NCBI RefSeq assembly: GCF_032444005.1
Contig: NC_091289.1
Location: forward strand, 13,392,001 to 13,456,000
DNA length: 64,000 nt
Source: Ranitomeya imitator
Lineage: Eukaryota
Direction of reading: 5' to 3'
The position numbers and the translations under genes were made by a program. Every line of letters starts with the position of its first letter. Position 1 is the first letter of the stretch. The notes under the pieces were generated by a model that saw only the letters and a list, made by a program, of their open reading frames with translations, ran no database searches and had not been told where the DNA came from. Positions 9,936 to 63,052 of this stretch are shown here, piece by piece.

Positions 9936-10049
9936 TTACCTGGATGGTCTTCTGTGTTGGGCGCACTTAGTCTTTGCTCCTATTGTCTGGTCTTATTATG
10001 CAGCATATGGCGCCCGTTGTTTCCCATGAATGCTGTCCGTCCTGTAAAC

Positions 10050-10244
10050 CAGGGGTGTCAAACTGCATTCCTGGAGGGCTGCAAACAGGTCATGTTTTCA
10101 GGATTTCCTTGTACTGCACAGGTGATAATTTAATGACATACACAAATAATGAGTTGGTGATTAAATTATCACCTGTGCAGTACAAGGAAATCCTGAAAAC
10201 ATGACCTGTTTGCAGCCCTCCAGGAATGCAGTTTGACACCCCTG
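10050..10244. mobile_element. 195-bp hAT (Charlie-like) MITE forming a perfect hairpin
   Basis: About 85-bp perfect inverted arms starting CAGGGGTGTC, and 8-bp TSD CTGTAAAC at 10042-10049 and 10245-10252. Confidence 0.93.
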
Positions 10245-11122
10245 CTGTAAACCTTTACTGCAGGGGGAGGGTCTCCTGACTATGTCCCACGTTTAATTCC
10301 TCCTGTACTGTATGGATTTATTTCTTTCATATTTTACCATTTTTTTCAGTGTTTTTTTTTTTTTCTTCACATTTTGCTTTGACTTGTAATGTGTGTTTTT
10401 TTTTTTTTTTTTTGCAGTCGTATTTTGCTCTGCCATTGTTAGTTGTGTTCCGCTTGTTTCTTTTTGTCGGCGTGATTGTCTAGCAGAGTAATAAATCCAT
10501 ACTGGCAGCCATACTCCTCACCTTGTCCTTCCTCTTCCTCACTTCCCTCTTGTCGCCGTTGCATGGTTACAGGGGTTCTCCGCTTTGGGCTGTCCTTATC
10601 AGGCAGGAGCGCTGCAGATCAGTGTTGTGCAGTGAGACCTCGGCGATCAGCTGCAGACAATCTGGCTGTGTTCAGTTTCGCTGCAGTGCCCCTGCAGGGG
10701 GAATGGAGCGTTACACTTGCCATTTGACTATCTGTGCTGCGGTTTGTCCTGATCCGTTTGGTGTCTCCTGTTGTAGTCCTGGAGGGTCTTATTTCTTGGC
10801 TGACATCATTACGACCCCCTTGAGCTCTGGGCTTTCTGTTTGGCTTTCAGTGGCTGAAGTCCAGGATTCAGTTTGTGTAAAGGGACCTGGAGAAACGTGA
10901 CCCGGGTGGTTGGTACATGACACACATCCTGGCGTTGTGCAATGCTGCGGAGTGTCCGCGCCGGCTGTTTATTCCTCAGTGATTGGTGAGCTGTGAGGAT
11001 TTTCCTGATGACGGACGCAGGTTTGTTTTTCTGTTCTTCAAAAAGTCACGAAGGACGGAGCTCATTGATTTATGGTGGAAACTGTCAGTTATAGTCACAG
11101 CAAGGTTAGTGCTGCATGCTGA

Positions 11123-31274: not shown

Positions 31275-31633
31275 AAACTGTGTTAGTTCCGAGAAATTAA
31301 ACCCTTTAATTTAAATGTCCCAATTTAACGACCCCCCCGTGATGGGATCCGGCGGCATCTGTGGGGGGTTCTCTCTACACCCCTGGTTTTAATCATAATA
31401 AAAACATTGGGGAGACTGAGAAATAGAGGGGTAAAGTACAGCCCCCTAACCCTGGCTGAGCCACTGACATAGGGAGCACCTTTTATTTTCTGCCTAGTGG
31501 TGATTTCTGGGGGGATTCTGCAGGGGGGTCGTGGTGGGTTGCAACAAGAAGCGTCCGGACTGCAGGAATTGGGGGTCATCGGCAGTGGGGGGGTGTCGGA
31601 TGAGGGGATACAGGGCGGCAAAGGTGACGGAAG

Positions 31634-31704
31634 AAACACAAGTTCCTGCAGAGACAGGCTGAGGCTGTTGTTGTTCTCAACGTGGTCCGCTCTGTCAGTA
31701 CAAG
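31634..31704 (+). promoter_or_regulatory. H1-10: H1-type promoter of H1-10 copy 1 (AC box, H4 site II-like box, degenerate TATA)
   Basis: AAACACA 31634-31640, TCAACGTGGTCC 31677-31688, TACAAG 31699-31704. Spacing matches the copy 2 promoter. Confidence 0.7.
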
Positions 31705-31740: not shown

Positions 31741-32520
31741 CGATCCACACAAAGCAGAGCGATCTGCAGAGCATCCACAGAGCAGAGCCATCTGCAGAGC
31801 AATCCACAGAGCAGAGCCATCTGCAGAGCAATCCACAGAGCAGAGCCATCTGCAGAGCAATCCACAGAGCAGAGCCATCTGCAGAGCAGAGCCATCTGCA
31901 GAGCATCCACAGAGCAGAGCCATCTGCAGAGCATCCACAGAGCAGAGCCATCTGCAGAGCATCCACAGAGCAGAGCCATCTGCAGAGCATCCACAGAGCA
32001 GAGCCATCTGCAGAGCATCCACAGAGCAGAGCCATCTGCAGAGCATCCACAGAGCAGAGCCATCTGCAGAGCATCCACAGAGCAGAGCCATCTGCAGAGC
32101 ATCCACAGAGCAGAGCCATCTGCAGAGCAATCCACAGAGCAGAGCCATCTGCAGAGCATCCACAGAGCAGAGCCATCTGCAGAGCATCCACAGAGCAGAG
32201 CCATCTGCAGAGCAATCCACAGAGCAGAGCCATCTGCAGAGCACCCACAGAGCAGAGCCATCTGCAGAGCATCCACAGAGCAGAGCCATCTGCAGAGCAT
32301 CCACAGAGCAGAGCGATCTGCAGAGCAATCCACACAGAGCAGAGCCATCTGCAGAGCATCCACAGAGCAGAGCATTCACAGAGCAGAGCCATCTGCAGAG
32401 CATTCACAGAGCAGAGCCATCTGCAGAGCAATCCACAGAGCAGAGAATCTGCAGAGCAATCCACAGAGCAGAGCCATCTGCAGAGCATCCACAGAGCAGA
32501 GCCATCTGCAGAGCACCCAG
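31741..32520. repeat. 28-bp minisatellite (AGAGCATCCACAGAGCAGAGCCATCTGC), about 28 copies, between promoter and ATG of H1-10
   Basis: 28-nt period, e.g. 31921 and 31949. Confidence 0.95.
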
Positions 32521-32550
32521 TGAGCAGCAGCGCAATTTGCAGAGCAGGAG

Positions 32551-33159
32551 ATGGCGCTGGAGCTGGAGGAGAACGTGCCCACCACTGAGGAGGAGGATGA
32601 GGGCGATGATGGGGAGGATGAGACCCCCGCAGGGAAGAGAAGCTCCAGGAGGAAGAAGGCGGCTGCAGCCTCATCGGGGGCCTCTAAGAAGAAGGGAAAG
32701 AAGAAGAACCAGCCCGGCAGGTACAGCCAACTGGTGGTGGACACCATCCGCAAACTGGGCGAGAGGAACGGCTCCTCCCTGGCCAAGATCTACGGCGAGG
32801 CCAAGAACGTGTCCTGGTTCGACCAGCAGAACGGCCGCACCTACCTGAAGTACTCGGTGAAGGCGCTGGTGCAGAACGACACCCTGCTGCAGGTGAAGGG
32901 GGTCGGGGCCAACGGCTCCTTCCGCCTCAACAAGAAGAAGCTGGAGGGCGGGGGGACCCCGGAGAGGAAGGCGGCCCCCAAACCGGCGGCGGCGGCCAGG
33001 AGGACTACAAGTGCCAGCAGCAGCGCCGCGAAGAAGAGCCACAAGAAAGCCAAGAAGGAGAAGCCCAAGAAGAGCAGCAAGAAGAAGGCGGCGGCGGCGG
33101 CGAGTGCGGGGGGCAGGAAGGTGAAGAAGACGGCGAAGCCCAAATCCAGGAAGGCGTGA
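32551..33159 (+). CDS. H1-10: Linker histone H1.10 (H1x), 202 aa, intronless
   Basis: MALELEEN start, diagnostic [32 protein letters not shown]...[33 protein letters not shown] globular domain, SHKK and GGRKVKK..KP C-tail. Good Kozak context; in-frame TGA 30 nt upstream fixes the start. Confidence 0.97.
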
Positions 33160-36724: not shown

Positions 36725-38330
36725 CAGTGGGGCAAAAAAGTATTTAGTCAGTCAGCAATAGTGCAAGTTCCACCACTTAAAAAGATGAGAGGCGTCTGTA
36801 ATTTACATCATAGGTAGACCTCAACTATGGGAGACAAACTGAGAAAAAAAAATCCAGAAAATCACATTGTCTGTTTTTTTAACATTTTATTTGCATATTA
36901 TGGTGGAAAATAAGTATTTGGTCAGAAACAAACAATCAAGATTTCTGGCTCTCACAGACCTGTAACTTCTTCTTTAAGAGTCTCCTCTTTCCTCCACTCA
37001 TTACCTGTAGTAATATCACCTGTTTAAACTTGTTATCAGTATAAAAAGACACCTGTGCACACCCTCAAACAGTCTGACTCCAAACTCCACTATGGTGAAG
37101 ACCAAAGAGCTGTCAAAGGACACCAGAAACAAAATTGTAGCCCTGCACCAGGCTGGGAAGACTGAATCTGCAATAGCCAACCAGCTTGGAGTGAAGAAAT
37201 CAACAGTGGGAGCAATAATTAGAAAATGGAAGACATACAAGACCACTGATAATCTCCCTCGATCTGGGGCTCCACGCAAAATCCCACCCCGTGGGGTCAG
37301 AATGATCACAAGAACGGTGAGCAAAAATCCCAGAACCACGCGGGGGGAACTTGTGAATGAACTGCAGAGAGCTGGGACCAATGTAACAAGGCCTACCATA
37401 AGTAACACACTACGCCACCATGGACTCAGATCCTGCAGTGCCAGACGTGTCCCACTGCTTAAGCCAGTACATGTCCGAGCCCGTCTGAAGTTTGCTAGAG
37501 AGCATTTGGATGATCCGGAGGAGTTTTGGGAGAATGTCCTATGGTCTGATGAAACCAAACTGGAACTGTTTGGTAGAAACACAACTTGTCGTGTTTGGAG
37601 GAAAAAGAATACTGAGTTGCATCCATCAAACACCATACCTACTATAAAGCATGGTGGTGGAAACATCATGCTTTGGGGCTGTTTCTCTGCAAAGGGGCCA
37701 GGACGACTGATCCGGGTACATGAAAGAATGAATGGGGCCATGTATCGTGAGATTTTGAGTGCAAACCTCCTTCCATCAGCAAGGGCATTGAAGATGAAAC
37801 GTGGCTGGGTCTTTCAACATGACAATGATCCAAAGCACACCCCCAGGGCAACGAAGGAGTGGCTTCGTAAGAAGCATTTCAAGGTCCTGGAGTGGCCTAG
37901 CCAGTCTCCAGATCTCAACCCTATAGAAAACCTTTGGAGGGAGTTGAAAGTCCGTGTTGCCAAGCGAAAAGCCAAAAACATCACTGCTCTAGAGGAGATC
38001 TGCATGGAGGAATGGGCCAACATACCAACAACAGTGTGTGGCAACCTTGTGAAGACTTACAGAAAACGTTTGACCTCTGTCATTGCCAACAAAGGATATA
38101 TTACAAAGTATTGAGATGAAATTTTGTTTCTGACCAAATACTTATTTTCCACCATAATATGCAAATAAAATGTTAAAAAAACAGACAATGTGATTTTCTG
38201 GATTTTTTTTTCTCAGTTTGTCTCCCATAGTTGAGGTCTACCTATGATGTAAATTACAGACGCCTCTCATCTTTTTAAGTGGTGGAACTTGCACTATTGC
38301 TGACTGACTAAATACTTTTTTGCCCCACTG
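36725..38330 (+). mobile_element. Intact 1606-bp Tc1 element (copy A)
   Basis: TA-CAGTGGGGCAAAAAAG...CTTTTTTGCCCCACTG-TA, about 205-bp TIRs, complete ORF. Confidence 0.98.
37092..38114 (+). CDS. Tc1 transposase, 340 aa, DD34E
   Basis: Paired-like HTH N-terminus, LWSDETK, FQHDND and PDLNPIE motifs; 34 residues between the second D and E; no stops. Confidence 0.96.
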
Positions 38331-38835: not shown

Positions 38836-40439
38836 CAGTGGGGCAAAAAAGTATTTAGTCAGTCAGCAATAGTGCAAGTTCCACCACTTAAAAAGATGAG
38901 AGGCGTCTGTAATTTACATCATAGGTAGACCTCAACTATGGGAGACAAACTGAGAAAAAAAAATCCAGAAAATCACATTGTCTGTTTTTTTAACATTTTA
39001 TTTGCATATTATGGTGGAAAATAAGTATTTGGTCAGAAACAAAATTTCATCTCAATACTTTGTAATATATCCTTTGTTGGCAATGACAGAGGTCAAACGT
39101 TTTCTGTAAGTCTTCACAAGGTTGCCACACACTGTTGTTGGTATGTTGGCCCATTCCTCCATGCAGATCTCCTCTAGAGCAGTGATGTTTTTGGCTTTTC
39201 GCTTGGCAACACGGACTTTCAACTCCCTCCAAAGGTTTTCTATAGGGTTGAGATCTGGAGACTGGCTAGGCCACTCCAGGACCTTGAAATGCTTCTTACG
39301 AAGCCACTCCTTCGTTGCCCTGGCGGTGTGCTTTGGATCATTGTCATGTTGAAAGACCCAGCCACGTTTCATCTTCAATGTCCTTGCTGATGGAAGGAGG
39401 TTTGCACTCAAAATCTCACGATACATGGCCCCATTCATTCTTTCATGTACCCGGATCAGTCGTCCTGGCCCCTTTGCAGAGAATCAGCCCCAAAGCATGA
39501 TGTTTCCACCACCATGCTTTACAGTAGGTATGGTGTTTGATGGATGCAACTCAGTATTCTTTTTCCTCCAAACACAAGTTGTGTTTCTACCAAACAGTTC
39601 CAGTTTGGTTTCATCAGACCATAGGACATTCTCCCAAAACTCCTCTGGATCATCCAAATGCTCTCTAGCAAACTTCAGACGGGCCCGGACATGTACTGGC
39701 TTAAGCAGTGGGACACGTCTGGCACTGCAGGATCTGAGTCCATGGTGGCGTAGTGTGTTACTTATGGTAGGCCTTGTTACATTGGTCCCAGCTCTCTGCA
39801 GTTCATTCACTAGGTCCCCCCGCGTGGTTCTGGGATTTTTGCTCACCGTTCTTGTGATCATTCTGACCCCACGGGGTGGGATTTTGCGTGGAGCCCCAGA
39901 TCGAGGGAGATTATCAGTGGTCTTGTATGTCTTCCATTTTCTAATTATTGCTCCCACTGTTGATTTCTTCACTCCAAGCTGGTTGGCTATTGCAGATTCA
40001 GTCTTCCCAGCCTGGTGCAGGGCTACAATTTTGTTTCTGGTGTCCTTTGACAGCTCTTTTATCTTCACCATAGTGGAGTTTGGAGTCAGACTGTTTGAGG
40101 GTGTGCACAGGTGTCTTTTTATACTGATAACAAGTTTAAACAGGTGCCATTACTACAGGTAATGAGTGGAGGAAAAAGGAGACTCTTTAAGAAGAAGTTA
40201 CATGTCTGTGAGAGAAAGAAATCTTGATTGTTTGTTTCTGACCAAATACTTATTTTCCACCATAATATGCAAATAAAATGTTAAAAAAACAGACAATGTG
40301 ATTTTCTGGATTTTTTTTTTCTCAGTTTGTCTCCCATAGTTGAGGTCTACCTATGATGTAAATTACAGACGCCTCTCATCTTTTTAAGTGGTGGAACTTG
40401 CACTATTGCTGACTGACTAAATACTTTTTTGCCCCACTG
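38836..40439 (-). mobile_element. 1604-bp Tc1 element (copy B), same family, inverted relative to copy A
   Basis: Same TIRs, TA flanks, transposase on the minus strand. Confidence 0.98.
39052..40071 (-). pseudogene. Tc1 transposase with a nonsense mutation
   Basis: TGT>TGA at 39484-39486 (LWGC>LWG*), a 3-bp in-frame deletion (TCRV>TCV), and several substitutions relative to copy A. The downstream frame is unchanged. Confidence 0.93.
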
Positions 40440-50212: not shown

Positions 50213-51082
50213 TAATATATATATATATATATGTAACTTGTAATAGAAAATGCATTTTGCAGCAGGTAGCTCCGCTCAGTCACCTGTCATTATCACAGAT
50301 GTAGCAGAGGTGAGTTTGGCATTTGTTTCATCTCATAGTGATTCTAGAACATATTATCTGTGGTTTTACATAGGACTGCAGGTAAATCTGCTACATTATA
50401 TCAGTAAGTTACTGTCGTGTCCAAAACAAACTAATAAACGACAAATTCATACAAGAACAATTTGCACATCTCAGGATTTTACATAGGACTGCAAGAAATC
50501 TACACTGAAAGCCTTAGTGACTATACACAGCGATGGGTGACACACTCGGCTCTGCTACATCTGTGTTCCCAGCTCATTCCTGTAGTTTGGTAATTTCCCC
50601 CAGATCCTTCTCCCCAGACAGGGTGGGTGTGTGCCAGGACCCCCCACATATAAAGTGCCAGCATGTGATCGTCGGTGCCAAGTTCAGGACCCCCCTCCAG
50701 CTGCAGATCACGTGGGGGGCGCTCTGTGTTACTTGCACCAAATTACCCCCCCTCTATCTCCAGCCCGGCTGAGCGCAGACCCCCCGAATAAATCTCCATC
50801 TGTCCCCTGAAACCTCCTCTTCTTGTCCAGACTCTGACCCCTCCGGATCGCCCCCGGTAAATCCCCGTAAATCGCCCCCCAGTAGCATGCCTCCCCACCG
50901 CTAGGGCTCCGGCGGGCCGGGGATGCACTGATCAATCCGGGGATTTCAGGGTTAATAAAGCCGAAATCGGCGTCGGTTTCCGTGCAGGTCGGCAGAGGGG
51001 GGTCCTGGGTGCAGGATGCACCGGAGATCCCGGTCCTGGACGGTCCCGGTTTGCAGAAAATGGCGCAGAATTGAGCGGGAAG

Positions 51083-51154
51083 AAACACAAGTTGTGGGGA
51101 AGTGGCGCTGGGAGCTGTTGTTGTTCTCAACGTGGTCCGCTCCCTACGTATAAA
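51083..51154 (+). promoter_or_regulatory. H1-type promoter of H1-10 copy 2
   Basis: AAACACA 51083-51089, TCAACGTGGTCC 51127-51138, TATAAA 51149-51154, Inr-like TCAGT at 51180. Confidence 0.8.
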
Positions 51155-51216
51155 GGAGGCGGGGAAGGGGGGCCGGGGATCAGTGTGATCGGCAGCAGCG
51201 GAGAGATCGCAGAATA

Positions 51217-51768
51217 ATGGCGCAGCAAGAAGTCGCACCGGCAACCCCCAGCAAAAAAGCCAAAGCGGCAGCCGGGGGCAGCGCCAAGAAGTCCGGCGGC
51301 AAAAAGAAGAACCAGCCGGGCAGGTACAGCCAACTGGTGGTGGACACCATCCGCAAACTGGGCGAGAGGAACGGCTCCTCCCTGGCCAAGATCTACGGCG
51401 AGGCCAAGAACGTGTCCTGGTTCGACCAGCAGAACGGCCGCACCTACCTGAAGTACTCGGTGAAGGCGCTGGTGCAGAACGACACCCTGCTGCAGGTGAA
51501 GGGGGTCGGGGCCAACGGCTCCTTCCGCCTCAACAAGAAGAAGCTGGAGGTGCTGGCGGTGCCCCGGAGGAAGACCCCCAAACCGGCAGCGGCGGCCAAG
51601 AAGCCGGCGGCTGCCGCCAAGAAGCCGGCGGCTCCGAAGAAGAGCCCCAAGAAGGCGAAGCCGGCCCCCAAAAAGAGCAGCAAGAGCCCCAAAAAGGCGA
51701 CCGGCAGCCGGGCCGGCAAGGCGAAGAAGGCGAGCAAGCCCAAAGGGCTGAAGGCCAAGAAATCCTAG
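51217..51768 (+). CDS. H1.10-like linker histone paralogue, 183 aa, with basic tails resembling canonical H1
   Basis: Globular domain identical to H1-10 copy 1, N-tail [15 protein letters not shown]-tail with KPAAAAK repeats and two SPKK motifs. Intact ORF and promoter. Confidence 0.95.
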
Positions 51769-52069
51769 ACTTTCCGAGGAAGGCGAGAAACCCCAGAATG
51801 TCCGGACCCCTCCCTCCTTCCCCCGCGTTCTATTTGTTTATCTTTCCGGATGAACTTGATACTTTGTTGCTATTTTTTTTTTCCTCTTGACGCTTTCGGT
51901 CCAGAGACTGAGACCTAGCGCTTCTTCTCCTGTGCAGGGTGTAAAGGGTTAACCCTGCTGACACTTTATTTTTCTTTTAAGAGTTTGACTTATTATCGTT
52001 TGCATGTGACACAACTTTTTGTTCTACGGTTTGTAGAATGTTTGCTTATTATTTTTTATATAATTTTTT

Positions 52070-52075
52070 AATAAA
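52070..52075 (+). terminator. Candidate polyadenylation signal of H1-10 copy 2
   Basis: AATAAA about 300 nt after the stop, followed by TTTGTTTGTTTTTT. No stem-loop. Confidence 0.7.
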
Positions 52076-52127
52076 ACCACAAATGATGAGGATTTTGGGT
52101 TTGTTTGTTTTTTTGCTGGTTTCTTAT

Positions 52128-52332
52128 GGGTATGTGTTCACGTTCAGGATTGCATCAGTATTTGGTCAGTATTGTACATCATTATTTGTAAGCCAAAATC
52201 GGGAGTGGAACAATTAGAGGAAAAGTATAATAGAAACATATGCACCACTTCTGTATTTATCACCCACTCCTGGTTTTGGCTACAAATACTGATGGAAAAT
52301 CCTGATGCAATCCTGAACGTGGACACATACCC
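52128..52332. mobile_element. PIF/Harbinger-like MITE
   Basis: TIR GGGTATGTGTTCACGTTCAGGATTGCATCAG / CTGATGCAATCCTGAACGTGGACACATACCC. Interior related to 53845..54059. Confidence 0.75.
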
Positions 52333-53057
52333 TTATTATAGTTGGGTAGGGGGTAGTTGAGACACGTTTAAAGCCAGGTCCGTATTGAATCCGTACTTTA
52401 CATCAGTATTTGTAAGCAAAAATCAGGAGTAGAACAATCTGGAAAAGTATAATAGAAGCATATCAGCACTTAAGTATTTATCACCCACTCCTGGCTTACA
52501 AATTCTGATTATAAAATACAGAAGGTTCTAATCTTACCAGATTTGGGAAAACTACAACTCCCAGCATTTCCTTTGCAGTGTGGGAGTTGGTGTTTTATCC
52601 CAGGTCTTGTGTTCTGGTCAATAAATGTGCAGGTTTCCTCATGTTGGGGAGTGCAGAATATCCGGAAATTACTGGGTGTAGCATTGGGACAATTAATGTA
52701 TTTTCAAGGGTTTGTGTTGTATAACACAATTCTGCAGTAACCGTTATTGCAGCTTCTGAATATTCCCCTTCCCCCTTCAGCAGGGCTGGCACTGAGCACA
52801 GGGAGGATTTGCCTTGTGAATCCTTATAAAGCACAAATCCTGCACTGGGGGATTCAGAAGTCTACAGTCAGTGACTGCAAACTTCTCACTTTAGACCAAA
52901 CAACCCTTTTAAGTTCTTTTAGTTTCATCTCTTTGTAACCATTATATTGGAGGAAACAGTATTTATTTTTTTTTAAAATGAGGTTTTCACTTTTTTAAAA
53001 ACAAATGGAGATAAATCCTTTCCCATAAGGTTAAAAAAAAAGTCTCCAGTTCTCTAA

Positions 53058-62556: not shown

Positions 62557-63052
<496 letters not shown>

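Follow-up and report, generated by a model that had tools for sequence, protein, structure and literature searches.

An acid-free H1.10 (H1x) linker histone gene in Ranitomeya imitator, probably a functional amphibian paralogue

To our knowledge, H1.10 is the least understood of the somatic linker histones. A 64,000-nucleotide stretch of the Ranitomeya imitator genome (contig NC_091289.1, positions 13,392,001 to 13,456,000 of the forward strand; hereafter the window) contains two genes of this type, one encoding a protein with a strongly acidic N-terminal tail (copy 1) and the other a protein with basic tails that are nearly devoid of acidic residues (copy 2). The question raised by this locus is what copy 2 is: a functional H1.10 paralogue with tails of its own, a canonical H1 with a borrowed core, a specialized sperm protein or a redundant duplicate. 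The unified histone nomenclature recognizes a single vertebrate H1.10 (PMC3380720), and none of the papers found in our literature search distinguishes two such genes in amphibians. The analysis described here makes it likely that copy 2 functions as an amphibian paralogue of the replication-independent H1.10, that it was tandemly duplicated together with its promoter, and that it carries tails predicted to bind more tightly than those of copy 1.

The acid-free copy and its transcript

The features of copy 2 in the window are as follows.

51078..51156, + strand: copy 2 promoter module, with the H1-box GGAAGAAACACAAGTT (51078-51093), a conserved block GCTGTTGTTGTTCTCAACGTGGTCCGCTC (51114-51142) and TATAAA (51149)
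51163..52092, + strand: copy 2 transcribed unit, an intronless polyadenylated mRNA of about 0.9 kb, from assembled contigs
51217..51768, + strand: copy 2 coding sequence, an intact open reading frame of 183 aa plus stop, from the translation
52070..52075, + strand: copy 2 poly(A) signal AATAAA, kept in R. variabilis

The protein is composed of an N-terminal tail (residues 1-32), a globular region (residues 33-111) and a C-terminal tail (residues 112-183), and its sole Pfam domain is Linker_histone (PF00538; residues 36-106, E 9e-16). The globular domain is a winged helix of the H1.10 type, and every top-ranking database relative carries the name H1.10 or H1x. The best solved relatives are the human H1.10 entries 7k63, 6l9z and 2lso, with E-values from 1e-45 to 1e-41, compared to 1e-12 for H1.4, and the scores of H1.4 and H1.2 are both 30 orders of magnitude behind those of H1.10. 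In its globular region (~43% of the query), copy 2 is 87-90% identical to amniote H1.10 (H1x; human H1-10; PDB 2LSO, 6L9Z, 7K60), and its net charge of about +40 is also like that of vertebrate H1.10.

The tails are different. The protein starts with MAQQEVAP, and E5 is the only acidic residue of the N-tail, whereas amniote H1.10 has the start MSVELEE, a longer N-tail with 4-8 acidic residues, further acidic residues scattered over the tails, and no S/TPKK motif. The C-tail of copy 2 (72 aa, with 24 K, 18 A, 11 P and 3 R) lacks D and E altogether and contains two SPKK motifs, compared to none in seven amniote sequences. In total there are three S/T-P-x-K/R sites (TPSK, SPKK, SPKK) against one in copy 1 (TPER), and the net charge of the whole protein is +42 versus +30. 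The translation also contains a triplicated Ala motif of the KPAAAAK type. The counts given in the preliminary description of this locus, that is, 13 acidic residues in the first 24 of copy 1, a single N-tail Glu, a triplicated motif and three versus one CDK-type sites, are all correct on the translations. The Ala motif is lineage-specific and variable, with shorter units in Ranitomeya variabilis and two units in Dendrobates. A contig of run X5 carries an in-frame 3-nt deletion at 51586-51588, corresponding to one Ala codon of the repeat, as well as several differences in the 3'UTR.

An acid-free, Lys/Ala/Pro-rich C-tail with S/TPxK motifs is a trait of canonical H1 proteins, and the resemblance of the copy 2 C-tail to these is one of composition, not of descent. 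Enrichment of Arg in the tails, as in protamine-like proteins, is not seen, considering the 3 R against 24 K in the C-tail.

The preliminary description had taken the intact TATA promoter, Kozak context and poly(A) signal as arguments for function, and had named a lack of expression as grounds for rejecting the proposal. The signals are indeed in place: the H1-box core AAACACA lies at 51083, the TATAAA at 51149 and the AATAAA at 52070, and the start context AATAATGG around the ATG has A at -3 and G at +4. To determine expression, assembled contigs of four runs, from four studies, were placed on 50400-53000. The contigs on copy 2 span 51163-51587, 51708-52092, 51191-52083, 51210-52208 and 51226-52077, their depth over the gene is high in the four runs, and no contig of these runs was placed on 50400-51162. 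Contig 5' ends lie just downstream of the TATAAA, and the contig of run X1 crosses both copy-specific tails and the 3'UTR with zero mismatches. The contig of run X9 ends at 52092, 16 nt past the AATAAA, and then continues with 23 A's. Thus, the RNA contigs agree with both the promoter and the poly(A) site, and the gene is expressed. Since coverage is limited to the unit from promoter to poly(A) site, and a poly(A) tail is present, the contigs represent mRNA and not genomic DNA; the RNA nature of the runs, which carry just the flag 'RNA?', was deduced from this pattern. At least part of the copy 2 stretch was found in 20 of the 22 runs listed (8 studies), and at least half of the sampled words in 15.

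An Rfam search detected no histone stem-loop anywhere in the window, and the contigs run collinearly with the genomic sequence. Copy 2 therefore has the intronless, polyadenylated mRNA without 3' stem-loop that is found in the H1.10 family, and neither the stem-loop in place of poly(A) nor the globular domain of a canonical replication-dependent H1. This polyadenylation is compatible with replication-independent expression. Just beyond the poly(A) site, at 52140-52400, there is a repeat that draws hundreds of short contigs with a depth of up to ~25,000 and many differing loose ends. It resembles a family of repeats that is dispersed and transcribed and has features of inverted repeats.

One core and two kinds of tail

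The second gene of the pair lies upstream on the same strand.

32551..33159, + strand: copy 1, the acid-capped H1.10 paralogue, 202 aa, 18.7 kb upstream of copy 2
31629..31692, + strand: copy 1 promoter module, with the H1-box and conserved block as in copy 2, and TACAAGA replacing the TATA box
51319..51550 = 32716-32947, + strand: a 232-bp stretch that is letter-identical between the copies, their longest exact match, covering nearly the whole globular domain

A BLASTP comparison of the two proteins gave 83 identical residues out of 88 aligned, the first 81 without a difference and spanning the globular region, and no alignment outside this matched globular stretch. At the DNA level, 14 bp more match directly upstream of the 232-bp stretch, after one mismatch, and the flanks are diverged. 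The identical stretch is a gene-conversion tract. The GC3 of the core is 97.5%, and interspecies dS in the globular domain (51307-51552 and orthologues) is 0.08-0.21, which is 3-4x below that of the tails (0.25-0.82). Together, the low dS and the high GC3 may be signs of a GC bias in the conversion, or of selection acting on the synonymous sites of this tract.

Outside the core, the N-tail of copy 1 is 53 aa long and has 13 D/E among its first 24 residues. The acid-capped type in other frogs has 9-30 acidic residues in this tail. The C-tails have two motifs in common, one ending in [H/P]KKAK and the other PKKSSK, which occur in the same order in both copies. On the basis of such short motifs the preliminary description had concluded that the C-tails are homologous, and their collinearity supports this reading.

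The promoter is the other shared element. The conserved module consists of AAGAAACACAAGTT, which contains the H1-box AAACACA, followed after ~20 nt by GCTGTTGTTGTTCTCAACGTGGTCCGC and after a further ~8 nt by TATAAA. Besides copy 1, it was found upstream of the orthologues in Ranitomeya variabilis, Dendrobates, Anomaloglossus and Xenopus, in the latter at both paralogues. It is also present in Hyla, where the aligned row begins just a few bases 5' of the H1 box, and in Ascaphus the block and TATA were seen in a fetched stretch that begins downstream of the H1 box. Because the promoter is common to both copies, copy 2 arose by tandem duplication at the DNA level, and not as a retrocopy or by fusion with a canonical H1. 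In its promoter module, identical core DNA and homologous C-tail, copy 2 is thus like the acid-capped amphibian H1.10 represented by copy 1 and by X. laevis 'h1fx' (NM_001086796.1), and it differs from this type in acidity and charge.

Several other elements were noticed around copy 1. A ~0.8-kb minisatellite at 31748-32546, with about 18-28 copies of the 28-bp unit GCAGAGCATCCACAGAGCAGAGCCATCT and 90-96% matches, sits between the copy 1 promoter module (31629-31692) and the ATG (32551), which would leave copy 1 with a very long, repetitive 5'UTR unless its start site is displaced. The spacer that separates the H1.10 genes contains an intact 340-aa open reading frame on the + strand (37092-38114), by its look a Tc1/mariner-type transposase, and on the - strand an inverted, broken second copy of it (39052-40071), with long tandem arrays around both.

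Distribution, synteny and constraint in amphibians

The tails of copy 2 are not peculiar to Ranitomeya imitator. A word search found full-length relatives with this tail type in 28 anuran species, the acid-free type ranging over Ascaphus, Bombina, Discoglossus, Rhinophrynus, Xenopus, pelobatoids, ranoids and hyloids. The closest relative, that of Ranitomeya variabilis, falls in the same 90% cluster. Most of these proteins are named 'histone H1.10-like', and other names are 'histone H1.1-like' (Anomaloglossus), 'histone H1-like' (Lithobates) and 'uncharacterized protein' (Ranitomeya variabilis). The suspicion that automated annotation might mislabel the gene as an ordinary H1 is borne out by the Anomaloglossus and Lithobates names. 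The properties of the acid-free type, of the acidic type and of amniote H1.10 are compared below.

Acid-free type, 28 anurans: N-tail 12-39 aa; 1-2 acidic residues in the N-tail and almost always none in the C-tail; net charge +34 to +50; 1-5 S/TPKK
Acidic type, 11 anurans: N-tail 38-72 aa; 9-30 acidic residues in the N-tail; net charge +15 to +37; 0-4 S/TPKK
Amniote H1.10, seven species: N-tail 42-51 aa; 4-8 acidic residues in the N-tail and 3-4 in the C-tail; net charge +32 to +41; no S/TPKK

S/TPKK motifs are not restricted to the copy 2 type, with 3-4 present in the acidic paralogues of Rana, Nanorana and Spea, and the consistent difference between the paralogues across Anura is acidity, not these motifs. 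As the figures show, the two paralogues have moved to either side of the amniote state. The overall basicity of copy 2 does not exceed that of human H1.10, and copy 1, with its expanded acidic tail, is at least as far removed from the amniote charge.

Gene order provides a second line of evidence, for which the H2A gene downstream of the pair served as marker.

62557..62937, - strand: H2A gene flanking the H1.10 pair, 126 aa, synteny marker

In Xenopus tropicalis, the acid-capped H1.10 (234 aa) is followed after 8.9 kb by NP_001016699.1 (211 aa; h1-10, formerly h1fx) and after a further 9.2 kb by H2A on the opposite strand; in the fetched locus, the acid-capped gene occupies positions 399-1103 and the gene for NP_001016699.1 positions 10001-10636. 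The window has the same order and orientations, with the acidic H1.10(+), the acid-free H1.10(+) and H2A(-), so NP_001016699.1 has the position and orientation of copy 2 between the acid-capped H1.10 and H2A. It begins with MAPQPETAPEAP, and like copy 2 has a non-acidic N-tail, in Xenopus with an ETAP motif, and SPKK motifs, with five motifs of the S/TPKK type. The two differ in that the Xenopus core has diverged from that of its neighbour (84% versus 95% identity to the window core) and that its C-tail is Arg-rich and repetitive, whereas copy 2 is Lys-rich and has a core identical to that of its neighbour. The caecilian Microcaecilia has an acid-capped H1.10 and, 16.3 kb downstream on the same strand, a less acidic one, with H2A(-) a further 7.7 kb on. 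R. variabilis, D. tinctorius and Ascaphus likewise have H2A(-) downstream of the gene of the copy 2 type, and in Pleurodeles both N-tail types are located on one contig. In tblastn searches, the window H2A was 98-100% identical to the H2A downstream of the gene in the copy 2 position in Xenopus, Ascaphus, Dendrobates, R. variabilis and Microcaecilia. This H2A barely varies: it is identical in Dendrobates, and there is one change in Xenopus (1/126) and one in Ascaphus.

Shared promoter and synteny thus place the descent of copy 2 in the H1.10 locus, as the second, H2A-side gene of a pair so far found only in amphibians. The preliminary description had presented it as a candidate new subtype. 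It is not a new gene, considering its relatives in 28 anurans, in Xenopus (NP_001016699.1) and in a caecilian, and existing annotation, Xenopus RefSeq included, already lists it. What stands is that it has gone unrecognized as a subtype in the literature searched. A well-characterized orthologue in Xenopus or fish had been named as grounds for rejecting the proposal; the positional orthologue NP_001016699.1 is catalogued, but it is not well characterized.

The gene order is most simply read as a single tandem duplication, which probably preceded the separation of the living orders of amphibians. For the C-tails, a tree (51 sequences, 79 columns) was weakly resolved and did not recover a single clade for all H2A-side copies; the C-tails of basal frogs, salamander and caecilian grouped with the acidic type. 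This grouping probably reflects conversion that reached into the tails, together with low-complexity alignment. In caecilians and pelobatoids the C-tails of both genes are alike too, so conversion extends further there. Since the C-tail tree was poorly resolved, orthology rests on synteny and N-tail motifs.

The N-tail motifs may point to an older date. The H1.10 proteins of coelacanth and teleosts start with M..(D/V)QETAP, like copy 2, and those of amniotes and the acidic copy with ELEE. We also considered the N-tail of copy 2 as an N-terminally truncated tail of the sauropsid type (AEEAPLAPEKK...), and dropped this, as the coelacanth/teleost start aligns from residue 1. The QE(T/V)AP start, which comprises very few residues, lends thin support to a split older than amphibians. 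A scenario in which amphibians keep two ancient H1.10 subtypes, one acid-capped and the other acid-free with S/TPKK motifs, on one core homogenized by conversion, with a split that is pre-amphibian and possibly pre-tetrapod and a loss of the acid-free copy in amniotes, is in our view rather unlikely.

Selection on the tails was estimated with the Nei-Gojobori method for five hyloid species, using copy 2 and the fetched orthologues of Ranitomeya variabilis, Dendrobates tinctorius, Anomaloglossus and Hyla sarda, with N- and C-tails pooled. The dN/dS ratio, which the preliminary description had listed as a further check, was 0.10-0.30 at a dS of 0.09-0.82; thus, the tails of copy 2 are under purifying selection. 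Blocks of its 3'UTR are kept across dendrobatoids as well.

Predicted binding and alternative readings

What copy 2 does on chromatin can be predicted from its relatives. According to a review on Zhou et al. 2021 (PMC9764139), on-dyad binding is common to H1.0, H1.4 and H1.10, the human H1.10 chromatosome has more open linker DNA, tail swaps assign linker-DNA closure to the C-tail, through T/SPKK motifs, and closer linkers accompany longer residence times. Among solved sequences, the chimera gH1.10-ncH1.4 (PDB 7K63), which has an H1.10 globular domain and S/TPKK tails, gave copy 2 its top score. The bit scores against this chimera and against native H1.10 were 158.9 and 158.5 for copy 2, and 149.5 and 175.7 for copy 1. 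Such equal scores for copy 2 would be in keeping with stronger linker closure, although its tails differ from those of the chimera in being homologous to H1.10, not H1.4, and the likeness is one of composition and motifs. In this sense, copy 2 would be a natural counterpart of the engineered protein.

The history that we propose starts with the tandem duplication of a whole H1.10 gene with its promoter, probably before the living amphibian orders separated, after which copy 2 has stayed between the acid-capped H1.10 and the H2A gene, and gene conversion has kept the DNA of its globular domain identical to that of copy 1. Copy 2 is then expected to bind nucleosomes on the dyad via the same H1.10-type winged helix as copy 1. 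With tails that are acid-free except for E5, two SPKK and one TPSK, and 12 more net positive charges, it may neutralize and close linker DNA more strongly than copy 1 and have a longer residence on chromatin, and the TPSK/SPKK sites could subject it to CDK-type phospho-regulation or release. The pair would thus provide two binding strengths on one DNA-binding core. Tighter, CDK-regulated binding of copy 2, as the preliminary description had predicted, is a plausible proposal, and because copy 2 does not differ from amniote H1.10 in total charge, the claim is made relative to copy 1; it need not hold relative to H1.10 in general.

The pair is of wider use. It is a natural, conserved combination of one DNA-binding core with opposite tail chemistry, and as such a ready-made test of linker-histone tail function, which parallels the engineered tail swaps that link T/SPKK motifs to linker-DNA closure (PMC9764139). 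If amphibians do have two ancient H1.10 subtypes, a protamine-like offshoot of the acid-free one might represent a living intermediate on the proposed route from H1 to protamine-like proteins.

Other readings of copy 2 have to account for the same data. It might be a recent chimera, in which a canonical replication-dependent H1 received the H1.10 globular domain by gene conversion. The sharp 232-bp identity tract between diverged tails and the S/TPKK motifs in these tails are what such an event would leave, and the H1.4 score of copy 2 is slightly above that of copy 1 (51 versus 42 bits). However, the promoter module is common to copy 1 and to H1.10 genes across Anura, the motifs of the C-tail follow the order seen in copy 1, the mRNA ends in a poly(A) tail and not in a stem-loop, and position and tail type are kept in 28 anuran species, with a gene order common to a caecilian, so that we regard this origin as very improbable. 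A redundant or decaying duplicate without function of its own is hardly credible. Copy 2 is a tandem duplicate, its core has been overwritten by its neighbour or has overwritten it, and the length of its Ala repeat varies, but the reading frame is intact in 28 anuran species, the dN/dS of the tails is low, promoter and 3'UTR are conserved, the mRNA is abundant and the paralogues differ in charge in the same sense throughout Anura. These observations fit the view of copy 2 as a functional, transcribed paralogue that combines an H1.10-type core with basic tails, which are acid-free and Lys/Ala/Pro-rich and carry S/TPKK motifs.

The remaining alternative is a role in the male germline. The acid-free paralogue could be mainly a linker histone of the male germline or a protamine-like precursor, compacting sperm chromatin in spermatids as SPKK-rich sperm H1s do, which would not preclude a somatic role. 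An origin from H1 is ascribed to the protamine-like proteins of sperm, and special H1 variants occur in Rana sperm (PMC1479337). The C-tail of the X. tropicalis orthologue, with 16 R and 20 K in 99 aa and four SPKK in three repeats of the KSPKKAGRARV type, has a protamine-like look. In X. laevis, there is an odd-looking 'H1.10-like' homeologue of the acid-free gene (XP_018120176.2), and the label SNBP1 (LOC100192369) fits a diverged second H1.10 gene, so that X. laevis SNBP1 may be a diverged acid-free H1.10 gene; a protein of this name has also been listed on chromatin that was assembled on sperm nuclei in egg extract. Against a germline specialization in Ranitomeya imitator, its Lys-rich C-tail (24 K, 3 R) is conservative, its promoter module equals that of copy 1, and the mRNA is deep in four runs and present at least in part in 20 of the runs listed, from 8 studies, which are unlikely all to be testis. 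Furthermore, the unique 'H1fx' peptides from sperm belong to the acidic paralogue. Taken together, a mainly germline role is unlikely, and we favour a functional paralogue of the replication-independent H1.10.

The Xenopus names in this literature require care. 'H1fx' has been cited as a linker histone of Xenopus sperm or testis (PMC4200797, PMC7359334, PMC8097206, PMC10264595), and we had initially taken it to be the orthologue of copy 2. This assignment was withdrawn, since in the supplement of Oikawa 2020 (PMC7359334) the peptides unique to 'h1fx' NM_001086796.1, including KLEGLPYDK, match the acidic paralogue and not the acid-free one. The 'H1X' of the older Xenopus literature was considered as well and is an unrelated protein, B4/H1.8 (PMC13121930). 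Naming is inconsistent even between the two Xenopus species: by its peptides, X. laevis 'h1fx' NM_001086796.1 is the acidic paralogue, and the X. tropicalis 'H1.10 linker histone' NP_001016699.1 is the acid-free one. As the h1fx/h1-10 symbol is thus attached to different paralogues, published 'H1fx' results may concern different genes.
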